Shown: positions 52,861-63,652, numbered from the whole stretch's first letter. The stretch is DNA of 63,652 bases, filler included, from Octopus bimaculoides (GCF_001194135.2; 5 parts of 4 records of this genome joined end to end with filler, not necessarily neighbours in it); one strand, 5' to 3'. The notes: a model not told the origin generated them from the sequence alone. Program-made: numbers and translations.

Positions 52861-53454
52861 TTTTTTTTGCAGTCATTACCTTCATTACTTTCATCATCAT
52901 CGTCTTAAATCAATATCATTCATTATTGGTGAGTAACCGTACATTTTATTTTATTTTATTTCCTATAACATTTTTTTAAACATTATATATNNNNNNNNNN
53001 NNNNNNNNNNNNNNNNNNNNNNNNNNNNNNNNNNTTAATTAATTAANNNNNNNNNNNNNNNNNNNNNNNNNNNNNNNNNNNNNNNNNNNNTATATATACA
53101 TATATATATATATATATATACACAAAGAGAGAGACAGAGACAGAGACAGAGACAGAGAAACAAACAGACAAAAGAGAGAGAGAGAGAGAGAAACAGACAG
53201 ACAAAGGAGAGAGAGAGATGTTTTTATATCAGAATGTCAGTTTACAATTAGGTGGTTGACATTAGAATATGGTTATAATAGAATAAAAACAGATGCACCA
53301 ACAATTCATGAAACTGTCTATTTGACATGTGATGTCAAGATGCACACATACACACACACATGCACTCACACATATACATACAATACACACACACACACAC
53401 ACACGTACACACACACACTTATGATGGAAAAATATAACACACAGACAAGGTCAA

Positions 53455-53720
53455 AAAACAAACACAGCAAATTGCCAGGAGTCTTGGTCCCTTGACATCT
53501 CCTTTGTGAGTCTCAACATCTGTAGATGCTTTCTCACCACTTCATCTCCACGTCTTCCCGGGTCTACTCCTTCCACGTGTTCCCTCTACAATTAGAGATC
53601 AGCACCACTTGATGCAAAAAATTGTACAGTACTGTTTTTCTGTACATTATCTGCATTGAGTACATAGTATAGAATTTCTACTTCCTCCTTTTCTGCATAT
53701 CCAGCATAACCACATCTTAG
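53455..53720 (-). mobile_element. RTE LINE 3' remnant
   Basis: VEGTRGRSRPGKTW motif on the minus strand. Confidence 0.65.
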
Positions 53721-53801
53721 TTGGTAATAATAGTTTTCTCTTTTGCTAATACTCTCATTTGTGCACAATTGAATTTTGGGCTTCTCCAATCCAAACATGT
53801 A

Positions 53802-54365
53802 CAAAGGTGGGCTGTAAAGTTCATAGGTTGACTATGAACAAGTAATGCTAGGGCTGTGAAATGTTGTACACATTGATTTCAACACTTCTTATTAGTAACA
53901 GCAGTGTTTCTTTCCAGCTAAACTGACATCTGACTGTTCAAATAAGACTTCAAAAGTAACTAATAGCTACTTCTCTTGAAAATAGACAAAATTTGGCATC
54001 ATGGTTATCAAGTACTTGCAGAAAAAGGGTTTAGCCCCCAAGAACATTCATGCTGACAAGGTTGCTACATTAGAGGATGATGCTCCAGTTTTATCAACAG
54101 TGCTAAAGTGGCAGCTGAATTTAGGAGAGAAGGGAATCTTGAAGATGACCTAAACTATCACCACTGAGGAAAACGCTGATTGTATTCACCCCATGGTGAT
54201 GGATGACAGGTGATAGACTATGAATCAAATAGCCAATGCTGTTAGCATATCCCTTTAGAGACTTGAGAATATTCTGCACTCCAAACCTGGCACGATGAAC
54301 ATTTCTACTTGGTGGGTGCCACATCATCTGACACTTGATCAAAAGCACACCAGGCTGCCCACATC
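53802..54365 (+). mobile_element. Mariner 5' fragment (TIR plus HTH region)
   Basis: TA|caaaggtgggctgtaaagttcatagg terminal repeat; VIKYLQKKGLAPKNIHAD...STVLKW; WVPHHLTLDQK. Confidence 0.8.
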
Positions 54366-54369
54366 ATAG

Positions 54370-54900
54370 GCTTTCGCTGTCTTCATATCCTTAATGGCCC
54401 TTTCAATAATATAGCAATTAACCTCAGCAGCTAGCCTTCTTGTTGGAGACACCAATTGTAACTCCTCTTTCCCCACATATTCTCTTTATTCAGCAGGTCA
54501 TGTGCACCATAATCTTTCATAAGCACTTTTGATCAATGTCATGGTTTACCCTGACAGATTACTTCTGGTCCTTACGGTTTAGAACACTGACAAACCTCTT
54601 ATTTACTGCTTCTCTCCTTTACTCGAGATATTTAAATCAAACTACTCTTCTACCAATCTGATAGTGTTCCTTCCTTCCCCACCTATTTCCTCCACCATTT
54701 CCAGTTCTGTCTCTTAGCTTTTATCCTTCTATCTGTTGTACTGTTCCACAACCATCTCAATCTCCACCTGTAAGGCACTAAGGAAGGAATCTTACTCCAT
54801 CAACAAATCTGGTAAGTGGCTCAGAGTAACTTGTCTTGCAATAATGCCCTATGATCCTGCATCTCCTCCTCTTTTTGTCAAAGGCATTGCTCTTTTATCT
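54370..54900 (-). mobile_element. RTE LINE fragment (endonuclease-RT linker)
   Basis: WLWN...IKAKRQNWK and LLNKEN.W...AIKDMKTAKA remnants; same family as 56851. Confidence 0.6.
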
Positions 54901-54910
54901 GTGATAGGAA

Positions 54911-54980
54911 CACACAAAAAACACTCCCCACACACAAAAAACACTCCCCACACACAAAAAACACTCCGCACACACAAACA
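54911..54980. repeat. 20-bp tandem repeat (about 3.5 units)
   Basis: Unit cacacaaaaaacactcccca. Confidence 0.85.
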
Positions 54981-55921
54981 CACACACGTATGCATAGTCT
55001 GGATCATATCCATAAAATAGAAACAGATGTTAACTTACACCATATAAAATGTGGATCATCATGCTTGTACCACTTGTCTACACCAATTAGAATGGTCTCT
55101 GATCTTAACTTACTAACCTAGATTCTTTTCTAAATACGTTCTGTCCAATGTTTTTTCTTTCCTCTTAAATGCCTTATTTTGGAATACTTTTATGCTCACT
55201 AAACAGCAATATTCATCTGGACATAGACTATTTACCTATACCTACTTATTCTTAACTGCATATTTATGACGGTCTGCAACAAAAAGTAGTTAATGAAACT
55301 GCTTTTCCCTTTAATTGATATGTGATTTATTTCTTATCTGTTATTATCTAAGAATTATCAAATGAATTTGTTGCTATAGTTGCACATTAAACATAGTTGG
55401 ACTACCTTGATGTTTGTTTAAAAAAGAGAGATTATGATTATGATAAAATAATGAAAGCAATATTTACTAAGCAAGTGAGCACTATTATACAAAGAAACAA
55501 TTAGATGTAAAATATCATAGAAAATCATTAGAATTAGGAATCAAATGTGAAAATATTATCAAGTGGCAAGCAGAAAACTGCCCGGAGGGTAGTCTTTCTG
55601 CTAGTCTTCTACTAGTCTGCTTAATAATTTCTTCTGCCAGTCTTCTTGATAATCCCTCTTATATTATTGTTGAGTTAGCACAAGAAAATGCAACAAACAA
55701 CAAAAACAATTCATTTGCAAATATCCAAATTTTCAGACCCATGCTACCACAGGAAAAAAATGTGAAGCAAAACTGTAAATTGGTTGAACACACACACACA
55801 CACACACACCACTATTTATAGGTTAAAAGTCAATAAAATATTTCATGTTTTTAAACACCCCTTATTTTTTTTTATTTTTAACTACATCAGAAAATATAGA
55901 ATATCTTGATAACAGACTTAC

Positions 55922-55993
55922 CCCAAGGCATGAATTCCTGTATCAACCACAAGGCGACATGCTCGGTGCATTTCAAAATTGTAACGGCCCAAC
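55922..55993 (-). CDS. DUF885-family gene, internal exon E (72 nt): LGRYNFEMHRACRLVVDTGIHAL(G)
   Basis: Acceptor aaaaacttttag|, donor ggg|gtaagt, phase 2/2. RAxRLVVDTGxH is a conserved DUF885 motif. Confidence 0.92.
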
Positions 55994-56184
55994 CTAAAAG
56001 TTTTTAAATTATACAAGTAAACAGCTTTTAAGATACAATACAGACATAAAAATACTATTTCCAAAAGTAAATGATGAATTAATAGTTTAACTTTCTCAAG
56101 TGTTTTCCTTTATAATATGTTCTTTTTAATGTTGAAACAGCATTAAAAAGAACGTCAAACTGTATTGTGTTCACATTTACTTAC

Positions 56185-56249
56185 AGTTTATAGTTATCTG
56201 TATACAATCCCATCTCTGTTCCAAGTGCTTCACAGTAAAGGCCCCAACC
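56185..56249 (-). CDS. DUF885-family gene, internal exon D (65 nt): GWGLYCEALGTEMGLYTDNYK(L)
   Basis: Acceptor ttttgcttttgacag|, donor act|gtaagt. Completes the EGWxLYxExLGxExGLY motif. Confidence 0.92.
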
Positions 56250-56275
56250 CTGTCAAAAGCAAAATAAAATATACA

Positions 56276-56303
56276 CTAGCAGAGATACCCAGCGTTGCCC
56301 GTG
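56276..56303 (-). mobile_element. Helitron-like 3' terminus (GC hairpin, then CTAG|T)
   Basis: Minus strand reads cgggcaacgctgggtatctctgCTAG|T. Similar ends at 62118-62146 (-) and 55578-55604 (+). Confidence 0.55.
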
Positions 56304-56850
56304 TTACATGCAATTAAAGAATTAGACTTTTCTGTTATATTTTCTCTAATGTACAGGAATATGTGTTATTCGAATTTCATCAAAATTGCAGATGAGGGTT
56401 CTTTCCCTCTTTACACACCCTAAAAAATTCTAATCATGACACATGTATCTCATACTACTGATCTTTATGTGCAGAATCCAAAATTCCAGTCTTATGGAAC
56501 CTATTAAAAGGATTTTGCTCCTGAAAAATGGACATCATGGAGCTCTAAAATGTAGGAATGAAGGCCCCTATTGGGGGTGGGGGTGTTAATGTCAACTAGA
56601 GAAGTTGAATTGTTGAGAATCTTTTTAATTTGGGTCTTATATGTATTGTTCGAATTTCTTTGAAATAGGAAATATATGTATGTTCACTGGGTTTGTAAAA
56701 GAGAGCAAAGCTACAGAAAACCAAAAGACGATGATCAAAATAAGCAGTCTCCATTTCAACGAAAGCCAGGTACAGAGGTTTATCTTTGGCTAGGTATTTC
56801 CCCTGCAGCTGTGTGATAAACTTGAGATATTTTGTGTCGCAAGACAGTGT

Positions 56851-58270
56851 GTGAGAGAGAATCATGATGTCGTAGGAGAGAAATGTGTCTGCATGGATGA
56901 TGGCTCACTTGCACTAAACGAGGCTGCAAAGAGAGAGGTTTGGAGATGCCACTATGAAAGGTACGTCAATAAAGAAAATGAATGGGAGAAAGAGAGTCTG
57001 CCGAATGTCGAGCCAACAGAGGGACCAGCTATCTGAGTTGACAGTACCTTGGCAGATAAAGCAATTAAGAGTATGAAGACAGGGAAAGCCGCCGGCCCAA
57101 CAGGAATCACTGCAGAGATGCTCNNNNNNNNNNGGGAAAGCCGCCGGCCCAACAGGAATCACTGCAGAGATGCTCAAAATATCTGGCAGTGTCGGTTATA
57201 GCATAGTCACCCGTATAGTTAACCAGGTGATATATGAAGGAGTCATATCCAATGACTGGTGTAGCAGCACCATAGTCAACTGCTATAAAGGTAAAGATGA
57301 TGCTTTAGATACAAATAATTACAGAGGTATCAAGTTGTTGGATCAGGTAATGAAGGTCATGGAGAGGGTCATAGCCCAACTAATTAGGGAAAGAGTCAGT
57401 CTAGATGAGATGCAGTTTGGGTTCGTACCAGGGAAAAGCACCACTGATGCTATATTTCTGGTAAGACAGCTGCAGGGGAAATACCTAGCCAAAGATAAAC
57501 CTCTGNNNNNNNNNNNNNNNNNNNNNNNNNNNNNNNNNNNNNNNNNNNNNNNNNNNNNNNNNNNNNNNNNNNNNNNNNNNNNNNNNNNNNNNNNNNNNNN
57601 NNNNNNNNNNNNNNNNNNNNNNNNNNNNNNNNNNNNNNNNNNNNNNNNNNNNNNNNNNNNNNNNNNNNNNNNNNNNNNNNNNNNNNNNNNNNNNNNNNNN
57701 NNNNNNNNNNNNNNNNNNNNNNNNNNNNNNNNNNNNNNNNNNNNNNNNNNCAATAACAGAGGAATTCAAGACAGGATACCTCTGGGAGCTCCTCTATGCT
57801 GATGACCTTGCACTAATTGCTGAGTAGCTATCAGAACTAGAGGAGAAGTTTCAGGTGTGGAAGCAAGGATTAGAATCGAAGGGCCTTAGAGTCAACCTAG
57901 CAAAAACCAAAGTCCTAATAAGTAGAAAGGTAGACAAACCACAAACCCCTTCAGGCAGATGGCCCTGCTCGATCTGTAGAAAAGGCATAGGTAGAAACTC
58001 TATAAGATGTACCCAGTGTAAGCTATGGACACATGAGAGGTGCAGCAATATCAAAGGAAGGCTAACTAGAAGATAGTTTTTGTATGTGGCAGATGTTCAG
58101 GAGCAATAAACTCTGAAAATGTGCAGAGAACAACTTCTGTCACATTCCAGGGAGAAAAACTAGAAGTAGTTGATAGCTTCTATTATCTAGGTGACCAAGT
58201 CAGTAGCGGGGAAGGGTGCACTGAAAGTGTAGCTGCTAGAAGAAGAATAGCCTGGGCAAAGTTCAGAGAG
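56851..58270 (+). mobile_element. RTE-clade LINE ORF2 fragment within DUF885 intron
   Basis: NYRGIKLL, QFGFVPGKSTTDAIF, YADDLALIA and GLRVNLAKTKVL motifs; Cys-rich insert CSICRKG...CTQCKLWTH.RCS...CGRC; stops present. Confidence 0.93.
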
Positions 58271-59020
58271 CCTTCCAGGATTTTCCAGATGTATATCACT
58301 GCATATCTTTCTCACCTTCATTCTAGGGCGAAGTGTTTTAATTCTTTTAGTTTTGCAGTGAATTTTATATTGTGTTGACCATAGTTGGGAGCAGCAGTTC
58401 GAATTAGAAAAGCTATAAATAATAGCATGTAAATATTAGGTTAAAAAACACTTTGGATAGAAAAATTTAACAATACATATGTAGGGTAGTGGGTAATGTA
58501 CATTATCTTTCTTCAATTCTAGAGCTCCTAAAGATTTTCATGGGGGTCTTCAGTTTTTTATATTAAATGTGTGTGTGTGTGTGTGTGTTTGTACATGTTT
58601 ATCAATATGCTAGGCAGTATTAAAACCTTATGAACAGCACTAATTTTGCTTAGTATTGCTTTTATTAAAATCTTATCCATTAATTTGAAATACACACACA
58701 CAAACACATAGAAGAATTATTTTGATAAATCTAGCCAAACCACATATACATAAGTGAGTTCTAAATGTCATTCACACTCTCACATACACATACATGCATG
58801 CACAACACACACACACATATGCAGAGCAGCCAATTAGACCTACCAAATCAACACATTACTCATATCAGATACACACAAAGGTGCAGTCACACTGTCAATC
58901 TAACACACAGGTGTAACAACATTAGGCAGCTTAATATTTTCCAAATAATGATGATCCGAGGAATGAAAGTAAATATCTTCAAATATATTAAAAAATAAAA
59001 ACTAACAAAAAATTACTTAC

Positions 59021-59131
59021 TTCCATATAAGCAGTATGAAGCAAAAAGCGAGAAGGTGCGAGATAATATTTCATATCCTGCATGAAGCATCGAAATGCTG
59101 GACAGTTTTCTATTTTCAAGGCTGCTGATGC
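59021..59131 (-). CDS. DUF885-family gene, internal exon C (111 nt): ASAALKIENCPAFRCFMQDMKYYLAPSRFLLHTAYME
   Basis: Acceptor tttttttcacttcag|, donor gaa|gtaagt, phase 0/0, 37 codons with no stop. Ends in TAYxE, leading into GWxLY. Confidence 0.9.
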
Positions 59132-59208
59132 CTGAAGTGAAAAAAATAAAATCGGAGAAAATCAGAATAGCATTAATAAAACTCATGTTACAAATAAGAG
59201 ATCTATGG

Positions 59209-59487
59209 CAGTGGTTTTCAAACTGTGGTCTGCAAGGACAAGACAGGGGGTCCGTGGACAGCAAATACTTTTTATGGGCAATTTGATTTTATATATGGTT
59301 TTTAATTGAAATCTTTTAATTGACAATAAACATATTTGTTAAATACTGTTAAATAAACAAATGTAAAAATATATGTTATTTTAAGCAAATATTTATGTAT
59401 AAATTTCATAAGCATTTATAAGAGGGTCCCTAAGGTAAAGCCTGAAATATAAAGGGGTCCGCAAGTCAAAAAGTTTGAAAACCCCTG
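59209..59487. mobile_element. hAT/Charlie-type MITE (279 bp)
   Basis: TIRs cagtggttttcaaact / agtttgaaaacccctg (15 of 16 match). 8-bp TSD atctatgg / atctatgc. Confidence 0.9.
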
Positions 59488-59884
59488 ATCTATGCAGTTG
59501 CTAGAGTTGCTAGAAATTAATAGTCAAGTCTCCCTCAATTTCAACACTGCCCTCTTAGAAATGGAAGGATATATTGTCTACTGTCATCCAGAGAATACCA
59601 AACCTGGAACAAAAGATAGAATGGTCATGGCTAGAATATCTTTGTGTATAGGGCTGTTTGATCAGAACTGACCAGAGGCTAAACAACAACTCTAGTTACC
59701 ATGATGGGAACTTCAGCACAAGTTACTCACTCTGAACAATATAGTAGCTAAATATGTTTTAACAGCCTCAGAGGTGAGAAAAAATCACTTGCGAGACAGA
59801 AATGCAGATCTCCATATTACTGACCTAACAAAAATCATACCTAGGGTAATGAGAAGATACTCAATCAATAAAGATAGTGGTTAC

Positions 59885-60215
59885 TCTTTTAATTGTTTCA
59901 GTCATTTGACTGCGGCCATACTGGAGCACTGACTTTAGTTGAGCAAATCGACCCCAGGACTTATTCTTTGGAAGCCTAGTACTTATTCTATCGGTCTCTT
60001 TTGCCAAACCGCTAAGTTACAGGGACATAAACACACCAGCATTGGTTGTCAAGCGATGTTGTGGAGGGGGGGGACAGACACACAAACACCCACACACATA
60101 CATATACATATATATACGACAGGTTTCTTTCAGTTTCCGTCTACCAAATCCACTCACAAGGCTTTGGTCAGCCTGAGGCTATAGTAGAAGACACTTGCCC
60201 AAGGTGCCACACAGG
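59885..60215 (-). mobile_element. SINE family A, CpG-decayed copy (another partial copy at 63335-63490)
   Basis: Colinear with the copy at 28687; many CpG to TpG/CpA changes. Confidence 0.9.
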
Positions 60216-60623
60216 TGGAAAAACTAAAGTACTGAATAGCATTTAATCATTTAATTTGATATCTACACATCATATGCCTGCTCAGTCAAGGATAACAGGG
60301 GCTGCACTACAAGGCCACTACCACCGACAACAACACAGCTAACTAGAGATACCCAGCAATAATACCACCACCACCATTAAGATCTTCACAACTACTTCTC
60401 ATGGTTCTGGGATGAATATCGAGATTTAAGTTCAAAAAGTGTATGGTTATTACAGGAACTGGTGTGATGCTTGTGCTGTGAAAATACCATTACTGAGATC
60501 TGACTCAGTTAAAAAATATCTAAGTTAATATTTAACTTTAACATACTAATTCTCCCAAATTAACAATGAATGTTGGATTTACTAGAACTTCTCTCCAATC
60601 TGAAAATTTTAGATAGAACTAAC

Positions 60624-60684
60624 CTGGGTATGATGACCAGGAATTCCTTCATGTAAACATAAGGCAGGTATTTCATATTTAGGG
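60624..60684 (-). CDS. DUF885-family gene, internal exon B (61 nt): (S)PKYEIPALCLHEGIPGHHTQ
   Basis: Acceptor tttttttctttgtag|, donor cag|gttagt. Encodes HExxPGHHxQ, the signature metal-binding motif of DUF885 proteins. Confidence 0.92.
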
Positions 60685-61114
60685 CTACAAAGAAAAAAAT
60701 TTGAAATATATTTAGAAGAAAATAATCAGACATTTTAAGAAGAATTACACTTTTCTTTTGTTTGACCAGGGAAATGGAAATGAATACACAACAGAATAAA
60801 AACAAAATTTTCAAATAATTTATAGGCAAACATTCATCAATAGATTTAACCAATAAATATATCTTTCTTTTTAAAAAAAAACATCCTTCTACAATCAATT
60901 AAAAAGTAATTGCTTATTCACCTAATGCATGAGTAAGATAAATAGAGTCAGTTACTTGATCAGTTGTAAACTAGGTTATCTGTTAACATGTGATTAGTCA
61001 TACTGACTCCTGTGAATGATAATTCAGGGACTTACACTCTTCTCAAATGTTTTAATGGAATAAGTGAAGCAGCAACAAACAAGGGTTAAACATGGCAACA
61101 GACTCAGATTTGCT

Positions 61115-61570
61115 GGTGCATGTCTCAGTGATTAGAGCGTCAGGCTCCCAATCATGAAAGAGTGAATTTGATTCCTGGACCAGGTTGTGTGTTGTGTTCT
61201 TGAGCAAGACGCTTTATTCTATTCTGACACCTCTCGGCGGACGCATAGCTTGCCGCTGTTCGGAAAGGATCGATGGGCCACGCTTTCGTGGTCCGTATTC
61301 GTACTGAAAATCGAGATCGAGCGAGCTTTTGCCCTTTTGCTCGACGTGTGGTTTCCGTTCACTCATCTGTAGAAATGAGTTGCGACGTCACTAGTGCTAA
61401 GCTGTATCGGCCTTTGTCTCCCTTGGATAACATCAGTGGCATGGAGAGGGGAGGCTGGTATGCATGGGTGCCTGCTGGTCTTCCATAAACATTACCCAGA
61501 CTTGTGCCTCAGAGGGGAACTTTCTAGGTGCAATCCCATGGTCATTCATGACCAAAGGGGTCTTTTACCA
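61115..61570 (+). mobile_element. tRNA-derived SINE (family C head), interrupted by the 28S fragment
   Basis: Degenerate A/B boxes (tctcagtgattag; gaatttgattcc) and gttcttgagcaagac as in the copy at 7198. The SINE resumes with gttcactcatctgtagaaatgagt after the rRNA insert. Confidence 0.7.
61222..61360 (-). rRNA. 28S rRNA fragment (domain V, pseudogenic), inserted in a SINE
   Basis: The reverse complement reads ...gagcaaaagggcaaaagctcgctcgatctcgattttcagtacgaatacggaccacgaaagcgtggcccatcgatcctt...gaggtgtcagaa. This matches conserved eukaryotic LSU sequence just 5' of the GTTACCACAGGGATAAC motif. It is only 139 bp, so it is not a functional rRNA gene. Confidence 0.9.
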
Positions 61571-61766
61571 CTTAAACACTAGTGCTTGCTATACAGTAGT
61601 TACTCCATATTAATTAACTATTTCACATAATTTATTCTCTGAGAGAGTTGTAGTAGCAATAACACACTTATATTAGAAAAATATCCAGTAAACTTTCATA
61701 TGTAGCTTTAAACAATGAGGAATAAATAGCTGGGTATCAAAAAGAAATTAAGAAACAAACTCTTAC

Positions 61767-61883
61767 CTGACATCAAATTTACTGGTGTTGATCATATAAG
61801 TGCCCATTCGGGAACCGTCTGGTGTTCCAGCTAAGTAGAAGGCGGCTGGAGAACTATCCATACCTTCAGGAGTAGGCTTGATT
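61767..61883 (-). CDS. DUF885-family gene, internal exon A (117 nt): (x)IKPTPEGMDSSPAAFYLAGTPDGSRMGTYMINTSKFDV
   Basis: Minus strand has a pyrimidine tract then ...caccttgaaag| acceptor and a cag|gtaaga donor. The frame is open and the phase 2/2 ends match the next exon. 'AFYxAxxxDGSRxGxYxxN' fits the recalled DUF885 segment that precedes the HE motif. Confidence 0.85.
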
Positions 61884-63652
61884 CTTTCAAGGTGAAGAGA
61901 ATGACAGAGGACAAGAAAATAAATTTATACGTGTTGGGTTGCTTTTTTTTTTTTTCTCATGTTTTTATATATGATTACTCTTTTATACGTTTCNNNNNNN
62001 NNNNNNNNNNNNNNNNNNNNNNNNNNNNNNNNNNNNNTTAATTAATTAANNNNNNNNNNNNNNNNNNNNNNNNNNNNNNNNNNNNNNNNNNNNATATATA
62101 TATATATAATATATATACTAGCAGAAATACCCGGCGTTACTATGGGATTAAATTTGTACGTAGTCTGTTTCTGAGAGCTATTCTATTGGACCTCTGTCTA
62201 ATCATTAAAACATTGATTTAATGATCCAGCATCAAGTGCTGCAGCATGCCTTTGCTGATCTTGAGAAAATCCCATCTTGCTTCTCACTTCATACTCTCGC
62301 CTTGGGTTTTCTACAATCCTCCTTGCTTTATACTTGTTTCTGGAGAGATTACGTCTTTTGTTTGATAGCATATTTTTCCCAATATTGTAAACAAAATATT
62401 AGGAACATAGAAAGAAATTATACATTAATCCCTATTTTCGTAAGCAGTTCTATCCATAAAAATTTTATTTGAAGAAAGCAGAAATTGAAAGAAGAGAAAG
62501 TGAAAAGAACAGAGCAAGAAATTGAAAGATGTATGTACGTCTATATGAAATGGACGTGTGCGCGTGCGTGTGTGAGAGAGAAAGAGAGTGAGAAAGAGAG
62601 AGTGAGTGAGTGAAGGTGTGTGTTGTGATGATTGATGTCTTTTAAGGTACACACACGTATAGAAAATGTGATGTCATCGTATAAAATTTTATGATAGTTG
62701 ATTTATGAAAAAGATTATAATGTTGAATTTTTGAAATGCAAATATGTGAATGGAAATTAAGTTTAATTTGTAGTCAAAATAGTACTGAATCTTTTGACAC
62801 CCCATACGTCAAAATCTGTAACTCAGTTTTGGAAAGCATAAGGAATATATAATATATAGGACAGTATGTCACATAACAATATAGACGTAAGACCTGGTGG
62901 AAATAGCAGCCAAATCTCCCTCAAAACACCCTACTGTCTTCATCCAACAATTCTGCCTATTATGTAGTTTGAATGAGAAACTGTAACTAAAGATTAAGAT
63001 TATTAACCCCACAGAGAGAGGAAAGAAGAGAGACAGCATAGCGACAGTTTTGGCTGACTGTCATCCTGTACTCCCCTTGTTGCTAGCGAAATGGTATGTG
63101 CAGGCTGTCTGAGCAACTGGTTATTTTAATGGTGGAACAAACAGGACATAAAGATTACAAAAATAGTGATTCTCACTTTGAAACTAACAATTTTGAAAAT
63201 CTTTTTAGATTACAGAACACCCTGCTCTCCCATGTATCCATGTTTAAAATTTCAGCACGATTGGATGAACAATACTTGAGTTATAAGCGCACAAACAGAC
63301 AGACAGAATGGATTTTTTATATCAAGATATACACAACGGGCTTCTTTCAGTTTCCATCTACCAAATCCTCTCACAAGGCTTTGGCCAGCCTGAGGTTATA
63401 GCAGAAGACATTTTCCCAAGGTGCCATGCAGTGGGACTGAACTAGGAATCATGTCTTTGAGAAGCAAGCTACTTAACACACAGCCAAGCCATAATTATGA
63501 ACATTACAATTACAACATAATTCCAGGCTTCCAGAAACAGTTGTTGAGTTAAAAATCTATGCATTCTCTCCTAAGTATTCTGTATTTTTTTATGCTCTAT
63601 GCAAATTCATTTGTGTCTGTGTACATATAAATATGAATATTCTTGTACATAA

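Follow-up and report, generated by a model that had tools for sequence, protein, structure and literature searches.

A partial DUF885 gene in Octopus bimaculoides and its descent within the animals

The DUF885 locus and its exons

We analyzed a stretch of 63,652 nucleotides from Octopus bimaculoides (GCF_001194135.2; five parts of four genome records joined with filler, referred to below as the window), and specifically a gene on its minus strand that codes for a protein of the DUF885 family. An earlier note, made from the sequence alone, had described five exons at this locus that splice to a 142-residue peptide. Using this peptide as query, we mapped the exons by tblastn, read their borders base by base and rebuilt the spliced sequence. 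The search returned five collinear minus-strand segments, each 100% identical to the peptide. All five exons (E1 to E5, Table 1) are preceded by a pyrimidine-rich tract and AG and are followed by GT (GTAAGA, GTTAGT, GTAAGT, GTAAGT and GTAAGT), with intron phases, in gene order, of 2 (upstream intron), 2, 0, 0, 2 and 2. The spliced E1-E5 sequence of 426 nt is free of stop codons and frameshifts and codes for a peptide identical to the 142 residues given in the note. This bears out the canonical GT-AG sites, matching phases and stop-free frame of the initial description, as well as its outer coordinates, with positions 55922 and 61883 being the exact ends of E5 and E1. The exons were also said to be invisible to a listing of open reading frames (ORFs), and none of the five is present there in its coding frame.

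The piece of the window that carries the gene extends from 53091 to 61993 and contains approximately 142 of approximately 583 codons, with ~340 N-terminal and ~98 C-terminal codons falling beyond it. No further exons were found between 53091 and 55921 when the C-terminal parts of four homologues and the full cuttlefish protein were used as queries. We consider it very probable that these are five internal exons, amounting to roughly one quarter of the coding sequence, of a single-domain DUF885 gene of the host that is orthologous to the cuttlefish gene for CAE1226712.1.

The family assignment made earlier was confirmed with the Pfam profile for DUF885 (PF05960), which the peptide matches at E = 9.2e-43 and 148.1 bits against a cut-off of 32.4, over profile positions 317-446 of 532. 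By its score this match lies far beyond chance. The peptide also matches the structural-genomics entries 3O0Y and 3IUK, and no second family was detected by a profile search of the PDB, by NCBIfam or by a permissive Pfam scan. In an alignment of 93 sequences nine residues are invariant in this range, namely H50, E51, P54, G55, H56, H57, G97, W98 and E103 (numbered here and below by the 142-residue peptide), and all nine are present in the octopus sequence. It likewise has the majority residue at 29 of 29 nearly invariant columns, including R128, A129, R131, L132, V133, V134, D135, T136, G137 and H139. The HExxPGHHxQ, EGWxLYxE and RAxRLVVDTGxH motifs that had been given as defining the family are therefore true signatures of it, and they are intact at this locus.

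Table 1. Features of the gene-bearing piece (positions counted from the first letter of the window; E, exon)
Feature	Coordinates	Strand	Remarks
Upstream intron, 3' end, truncated at piece edge	61884..61993	-	Pyrimidine tract, then AG (61885-61884); phase-2 acceptor position common to 7 of 7 orthologue genes compared and to the cuttlefish gene
Exon E1, 117 nt	61767..61883	-	(x)IKPTPEGMDSSPAAFYLAGTPDGSRMGTYMINTSKFDV(S); codes for the beta-strand region preceding the active-site helices; Sepia pharaonis counterpart also 117 nt
Intron 1, 1082 nt, phase 2	60685..61766	-	G+C-richer repeat of SINE-like appearance at ~61090-61560
Exon E2, 61 nt	60624..60684	-	(S)PKYEIPALCLHEGIPGHHTQ; invariant H-E-x-x-P-G-H-H motif at 60630-60653; 61 nt in Sepia too
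Intron 2, 1492 nt, phase 0	59132..60623	-	Repeat-like sequence at ~59880-60230
Exon E3, 111 nt	59021..59131	-	ASAALKIENCPAFRCFMQDMKYYLAPSRFLLHTAYME; bears the insertion of 12-13 residues that characterizes the animal/holozoan subfamily; Sepia exon 108 nt
Intron 3, ~2.77 kb (length uncertain owing to gaps), phase 0	56250..59020	-	Both assembly gaps and the retrotransposon remnant
Exon E4, 65 nt	56185..56249	-	GWGLYCEALGTEMGLYTDNYK(L); with E96 of E3 makes the invariant E-G-W-x-x-Y-x-E motif; 65 nt in Sepia
Intron 4, 191 nt, phase 2	55994..56184	-	
Exon E5, 72 nt	55922..55993	-	(L)LGRYNFEMHRACRLVVDTGIHAL(G); R-A-x-R-L-V-V-D-T-G-x-H motif at 55930-55965; 72 nt in Sepia
Downstream intron, 5' part, phase 2, truncated at piece edge	53091..55921	-	Repeats and microsatellites only; next exon (GW...) beyond the piece
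Decayed non-LTR (long terminal repeat) retrotransposon ORF remnant in intron 3	57049..58076	+	Reverse-transcriptase motifs including YADD, then a PHD-type zinc finger; interrupted by several stop codons and both gaps

Animal orthologues and vertical descent

We then compared the peptide with known proteins. An initial search with the 142-residue query gave short proteins, none longer than 249 residues and the best with 55% identity, while an exhaustive search of representative sequences gave 4532 relatives, the best of which reach 59% and are from animals (Branchiostoma floridae, Haliotis, Acropora, Strigamia and Cherax). When all fetched proteins were re-scored, the closest was a protein designated P0311 with 72% identity over 142 residues. 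The 90% cluster of P0311 includes the Sepia (Acanthosepion) pharaonis protein CAE1226712.1 (UniRef A0A812BG13), which is named 'DUF885 domain-containing protein', along with many intronless contigs of ~2 kb from sequencing runs that represent transcripts. Thus, a cephalopod DUF885 orthologue is already annotated and is expressed. No protein more than 72% identical to the octopus peptide was present among the ~15 billion proteins searched, even though other cephalopod proteins are among them, so the gene may be missing from, or fragmented in, the annotation of the host genome.

The octopus and Sepia sequences are recovered as a sister pair with 92% bootstrap, and their genes have identical positions and phases at all six introns. 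Exon lengths are 117/61/111/65/72 nt in the octopus versus 117/61/108/65/72 nt in Sepia, the difference being one additional codon in octopus E3. Intron lengths, in contrast, are quite unlike, with 1492 nt in the octopus versus 98 nt in Sepia in one case and 191 nt versus 1915 nt in another. Note that Sepia belongs to a different cephalopod lineage, and that the ratio of nonsynonymous to synonymous substitution (dN/dS) of 0.08 that we obtained between the octopus exons and the cuttlefish mRNA comes with saturated synonymous sites. The octopus gene is under strong purifying selection.

A search with the Haliotis protein revealed full-length orthologues of ~580 residues in gastropods, bivalves, a chiton, annelids, spiders, ticks and the horseshoe crab, as well as in decapods, krill, hemichordates, amphioxus, anemones, a coral, the sponge Sycon and an ichthyosporean. 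Orthologues are found in Porifera, Cnidaria, Mollusca, Annelida, Arthropoda, Hemichordata and Cephalochordata and in one ichthyosporean. Vertebrate or insect members were not seen among the named matches, no dedicated search for their absence having been made. The animal orthologues are single-domain proteins, and those of Haliotis, Mizuhopecten, Capitella, Limulus, Branchiostoma, Saccoglossus, Nematostella and Sycon, listed as 'uncharacterized protein LOC...', are 54-64% identical to the octopus region. The earlier description of the family as patchily present in eukaryotes hence understates its spread, and the rarity in animals that it implied is not upheld, given orthologues in eight or more animal phyla and a cephalopod copy that is both annotated as DUF885 and transcribed.

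Descent of the gene was addressed with intron positions, trees and a shared insertion. For intron positions, eight orthologue loci were fetched and each protein was mapped onto its own locus by exact spliced matching. All six intron positions of the octopus gene, together with their phases, are common to Sepia, Haliotis, Mizuhopecten, Limulus, Branchiostoma, Nematostella and Sycon; Saccoglossus lacks two of the six. Trees were built by neighbour-joining from Kimura distances with bootstrap, and included just two named bacterial outgroups. The full-length tree (578 columns) groups Mollusca at 99%, Arthropoda at 90%, Cnidaria at 100% and Metazoa at 73%, with the ichthyosporean outside the animals. 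Sepia falls within Mollusca at 99% in this tree, and the octopus peptide plus Sepia fall within the mollusc group at 58% when the 142 columns of the peptide are used. Finally, there is an insertion of 12-13 residues (E-D-x-x-Y-x-x-x-P-x-R-F) between FR(R) and TAYxEGW that is present in the octopus sequence, in all of the named animals and in the ichthyosporean. This insertion is absent from the named bacterial sequences and from 3o0y, and it occurs in many unnamed sequences. Together, the shared introns, the species-like tree and the shared insertion show, by sequence comparison, that the last common ancestor of animals already had this gene with its exon-intron structure, and that inheritance has been vertical since.

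This bears directly on the origin proposed in the earlier note, which was either a horizontal transfer long ago or the retention of a gene lost elsewhere. Retention holds within animals; transfer into cephalopods does not, in view of the shared introns and the tree. The phylogeny and intron-position comparison that the note had proposed as checks yielded a topology of vertical descent, the outcome it had named beforehand as refuting transfer. A transfer from bacteria to cephalopods or molluscs, with introns gained later, would fit the numerical dominance of bacterial and metagenomic sequences in the family (4532 matches, mostly unnamed), a Pfam name that reads 'Bacterial protein', and the listing of a Dictyostelium DUF885 gene as a candidate transfer (PMC3188802). 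It is contradicted by the six of six intron positions and phases that are common to sponge, cnidarian, arthropod and chordate genes, by a tree that matches the species tree with the ichthyosporean as sister to animals, and by the nearest named proteins, which are all from animals (55-72% identity) while the named bacterial ones lack the insertion. By these comparisons transfer into cephalopods or molluscs is refuted, and we regard it as exceedingly improbable.

A much older event, in which a bacterial gene entered an ancestor of Holozoa, of opisthokonts or of eukaryotes and was inherited vertically afterwards, is a different matter, as it is compatible with vertical descent within animals. The eukaryotic occurrence seen here, which comprises only animals, a single ichthyosporean, a chytrid and fungal fusion proteins, is in keeping with such an event, as are bacterial relatives with ~36-38% identity over the full length. 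The presence of the insertion in many unnamed sequences of unassigned origin speaks against it, and we consider this early transfer somewhat unlikely. What we favor for the animals is unaffected by it, namely vertical descent of the gene from their last common ancestor.

Several other features of the family were observed. The molluscs have a second, well-separated DUF885 paralogue group (100% bootstrap; P0176, P0382, P0363, P0346, P0356, P0345, P0329 and P0343) in which both of the two inspected N-termini, each from Haliotis, are hydrophobic, and whose members are probably secreted judging from these N-termini. The octopus gene falls in the other mollusc group, the inspected members of which mostly have no signal. 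In Nematostella vectensis the 659-residue protein P0320 (DS469546.1) has its C-terminal exons repeated, with the same segments occurring at ~11.6-12.2 kb and 14.0-14.6 kb, which reflects either a local tandem duplication or a fused gene model; a newer isoform, P0353, has 534 residues. Tandem DUF885 domains, two or three in number, occur in bacterial (Amycolatopsis, 1654 aa) and chytrid (Gorgonomyces, 1156 aa) proteins (P0121, P0122 and P0123).

Intron content and assembly gaps

Two assembly gaps, at 57124-57133 (10 N) and 57506-57750 (245 N), interrupt the locus. Both are in intron 3, between E3 and E4, and both lie within the reverse-transcriptase remnant listed in Table 1. Since E3 ends with ...AYME and E4 starts with GWGLY..., the invariant EGW motif straddles the junction, colinear with every orthologue. 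This indicates that no exon was lost in the gaps and that the reading frame is unaffected, so an exon missing from the assembly at this point was ruled out. The 10-N gap is bordered on both sides by a perfect 42-nt direct duplicate (57082-57123 and 57134-57175). Most likely, it represents two overlapping contig ends that the scaffolder left unmerged, in which case the true sequence is probably gapless with a single copy of the 42-nt repeat. There are also two perfectly complementary 40-nt arms, at 56773-56812 and 57466-57505, the second of which directly abuts the 245-N gap; these reflect either an inverted partial copy of the retrotransposon or a local mis-assembly. A minus-strand reading of ~56700-56812 extends the reverse-transcriptase sequence (…GKYLAKDKPLYLAFVEMETAYFD) that is interrupted by the gap.

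The remnant itself matches the Pfam profiles RVT_1 (E = 3e-5 and 2e-6, on the two sides of the gap) and PHD (E = 1e-5). Its relatives with RVT_1 plus PHD reach E values down to 3e-87 and include an Octopus vulgaris match at 52% and a UniParc entry at 89%. Thus, the claim that the introns carry host transposons holds for intron 3. A protein labeled 'MAG: Herbaspirillum sp.' (P0396), from a 1.5-kb contig, is 75% identical to this retrotransposon and probably represents eukaryotic DNA that was wrongly assigned to the metagenome-assembled genome of a bacterium.

For a contamination of the assembly by bacteria, the family name alone can be cited. Such a reading is opposed by five spliceosomal introns with GT-AG borders, by the animal-type retrotransposon inside intron 3, by a G+C content of 29-42% with microsatellites in the piece, and by a gene structure that is the one of animal orthologues. 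We consider contamination to have a negligible probability. The view that this is a host gene stands, with introns at conserved animal positions and a decayed non-LTR retrotransposon in intron 3. The nearest relative, a cuttlefish protein, is in keeping with a cephalopod host.

Other repetitive sequence is present in the remaining introns. There are interspersed-repeat-like stretches at 61090-61560 in intron 1, which is G+C-richer at 49%, and at 59880-60230 in intron 2; the latter may resemble an abundant octopus interspersed repeat. The downstream intron has tandem sequence at 53091-53218, 53343-53418 and 54910-54978, comprising (TA)15, an array rich in AG/ACAG, (CA)38 and 3.5 copies of a 20-nt unit. 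ARAGORN found no tRNA in the piece, and a scan with Rfam gave only mir-297 and SCARNA7, far under their gathering scores and in CA-repeat sequence, which we judged to be chance matches. A candidate mariner-type transposase N-terminus at 53990-54350, in a broken ORF starting MVIKYLQKKGLAPKNIHADKV…, was dropped as it had no Pfam match even at E = 10.

Fold, putative activity and related systems

We used structure models to explore what the gene product might do. The AlphaFold2 model of the Sepia orthologue (pLDDT 96.3, pTM 0.94) is matched by Foldseek to the DUF885 crystal structures 3O0Y, 3IUK and 3U24 with TM-scores of 0.89, 0.78 and 0.72, respectively. Next best is human neurolysin (8VJU; E = 6e-4, probability 1.0), followed by ACE2 at E = 0.5. 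The octopus fragment modeled alone has a pLDDT of 73, and its sole credible Foldseek matches are to 3o0y (E = 2e-3) and, more weakly, to 3iuk. In the models, the His-Glu pair closes one helix, a Pro-Gly turn follows, and the His-His pair opens the next helix; EGWxxYxE lies on the long helix that comes after, which in the alignment and the models bears the invariant E103 and the nearly invariant E96. In Pfam, DUF885 belongs to the Peptidase_MA clan (PMC12572635), and zinc sites have been reported in structures annotated as IPR010281 (PMC4539273).

Most orthologues, those of cuttlefish, abalone, amphioxus, acorn worm and sponge among them, have no hydrophobic N-terminus, and these five open directly with the domain; a hydrophobic N-terminus is present in crayfish, horseshoe crab and tick proteins, in the second mollusc paralogue group and in bacteria. 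Because the cephalopod, abalone, amphioxus and sponge orthologues have no signal peptide, the octopus protein is probably intracellular. Two reports connect other members with venom. A 599-residue DUF885 protein that is abundant in spider venom is conserved in arachnid genomes and has fold matches resembling M32 carboxypeptidases (PMC7682650), and a gastropod venom-gland data set includes a DUF885 transcript that codes for 606 residues (PMC11359391).

The motif, the clan assigned by Pfam and the weak fold match to neurolysin lead us to infer, by analogy, an intracellular zinc oligopeptidase or carboxypeptidase. It would be a zinc metallopeptidase of clan MA with two lobes and an all-helical fold. 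Its predicted metal ligands are His50 of the HE pair, one of His56 and His57 of PGHH, and an invariant Glu of EGWxxYxE, with Glu51 as the putative general base. A closed, neurolysin-like architecture would admit short peptides only, hence an oligopeptidase or a carboxypeptidase, and the octopus orthologue may act inside the cell in peptide turnover. For the animal clade as a whole, we tentatively propose a zinc peptidase of the cell interior, either an oligopeptidase or a carboxypeptidase and uncharacterised so far, whose metal site, HE-x2-PG-HH, is non-canonical. Most invertebrate phyla would have kept it since the holozoan ancestor, and its secreted paralogues would have been recruited into venoms; this is a possible reading rather than one we hold firmly.

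A number of observations weigh against our reading of the locus, the first of which concern the gene itself. No host-species transcript of the DUF885 gene was found, and as 142 of ~583 residues are visible, a disabling lesion is possible in the remaining part of the gene. These same points would be expected if the locus were a pseudogene or a decaying paralogue with its functional copy elsewhere in the genome, as would the lack of any protein more than 72% identical. On the other hand, the 426 nt have neither a stop nor a frameshift, the splice sites of all five exons are canonical, no invariant residue is lost, dN/dS is low and exon lengths agree with those of the cuttlefish gene, which makes a pseudogene improbable. 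That the gene is functional is supported only by the intact motifs and the dN/dS of ~0.08 across the visible quarter.

The remaining observations concern activity. The global TM-score to neurolysin is just 0.30; a sequence-profile search of the PDB returned nothing besides the three uncharacterised DUF885 structures; no activity, substrate or biochemical study of any DUF885 protein was found in the literature searched; and signal peptides were called by a crude count of hydrophobicity at the N-terminus. Moreover, zincins have HExxH on one helix, and the motif here is H-E-G-I-P-G-H-H. With HExxH absent and the two His groups on successive helices, metal binding and catalysis rest on analogy, and because of this departure from the zincin motif and of the weak fold match we file the protein as one that may work like the zincins, not as a member of them.

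The departure from HExxH also bears on whether the protein is real but no peptidase, acting instead as a binding protein or as an enzyme that uses its HE...HH...E site differently on a non-peptide substrate. The structural-genomics depositors assigned no function, a bacterial DUF885 protein has been pulled down as a vitronectin-binding outer-membrane protein (PMC10281475), and a fungal protein, from Talaromyces, has DUF885 fused to a nucleoside-phosphorylase-like domain (PMC8478523), all of which would suit such a role. Weighed against this are the Peptidase_MA clan, the fold match to neurolysin at a probability of 1.0, the invariant His, Glu, His, His and Glu that are expected for a catalytic metal site, and the occurrence of DUF885 in spider venom and in gastropod venom-gland tissue, alongside other processing enzymes. 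We consider a non-peptidase role distinctly unlikely, and a putative zinc peptidase remains our tentative choice.

In regards to significance, the locus adds one orthologue to a gene found across invertebrates, a cephalopod copy of which was annotated before. Its useful outcomes are negative ones, as there was no transfer from bacteria to cephalopods, no contamination and no damage to the coding sequence by the gaps. DUF885 is a large, conserved and presumably catalytic family with three crystal structures and a predicted activity only, so its biochemical function is the question of wider value, one that any animal or bacterial member could answer. The animal members are suited to a first biochemical characterisation given their conserved introns, strong constraint and occurrence in venom. 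Were the proposal for the animal DUF885 clade true, that clade would constitute a new peptidase family, with the cephalopod gene as one accessible member.

The closest known systems are those of the family itself. The bacterial proteins 3O0Y (a Colwellia lipoprotein), 3IUK (Arthrobacter) and 3U24 (Shewanella) have the same fold and aligned HExxPGHH, EGWxLYxE and RLVVDTGxH motifs, and they are functionally unassigned likewise. They differ in being 17-36% identical, in being lipoproteins or secreted, in coming from intronless genes and in lacking the 12-13 residue insertion that the octopus protein shares before EGW with the animal orthologues. Among the latter, those of some lineages, such as the spider-venom and gastropod venom-gland proteins, have a hydrophobic signal and are likely secreted, whereas the cephalopod-type protein has none. 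Beyond the family, neurolysin and thimet oligopeptidase (M3), ACE2 (M2) and the M32 carboxypeptidases are like the modeled DUF885 protein in having an all-helical two-lobe architecture, in which a helix with the His/Glu metal site, putative in DUF885, is followed by a Glu-bearing helix. However, these clan MA oligopeptidases have HExxH where DUF885 has HE-x2-PG-HH spread over two helices, and there is no similarity between them at the level of sequence.

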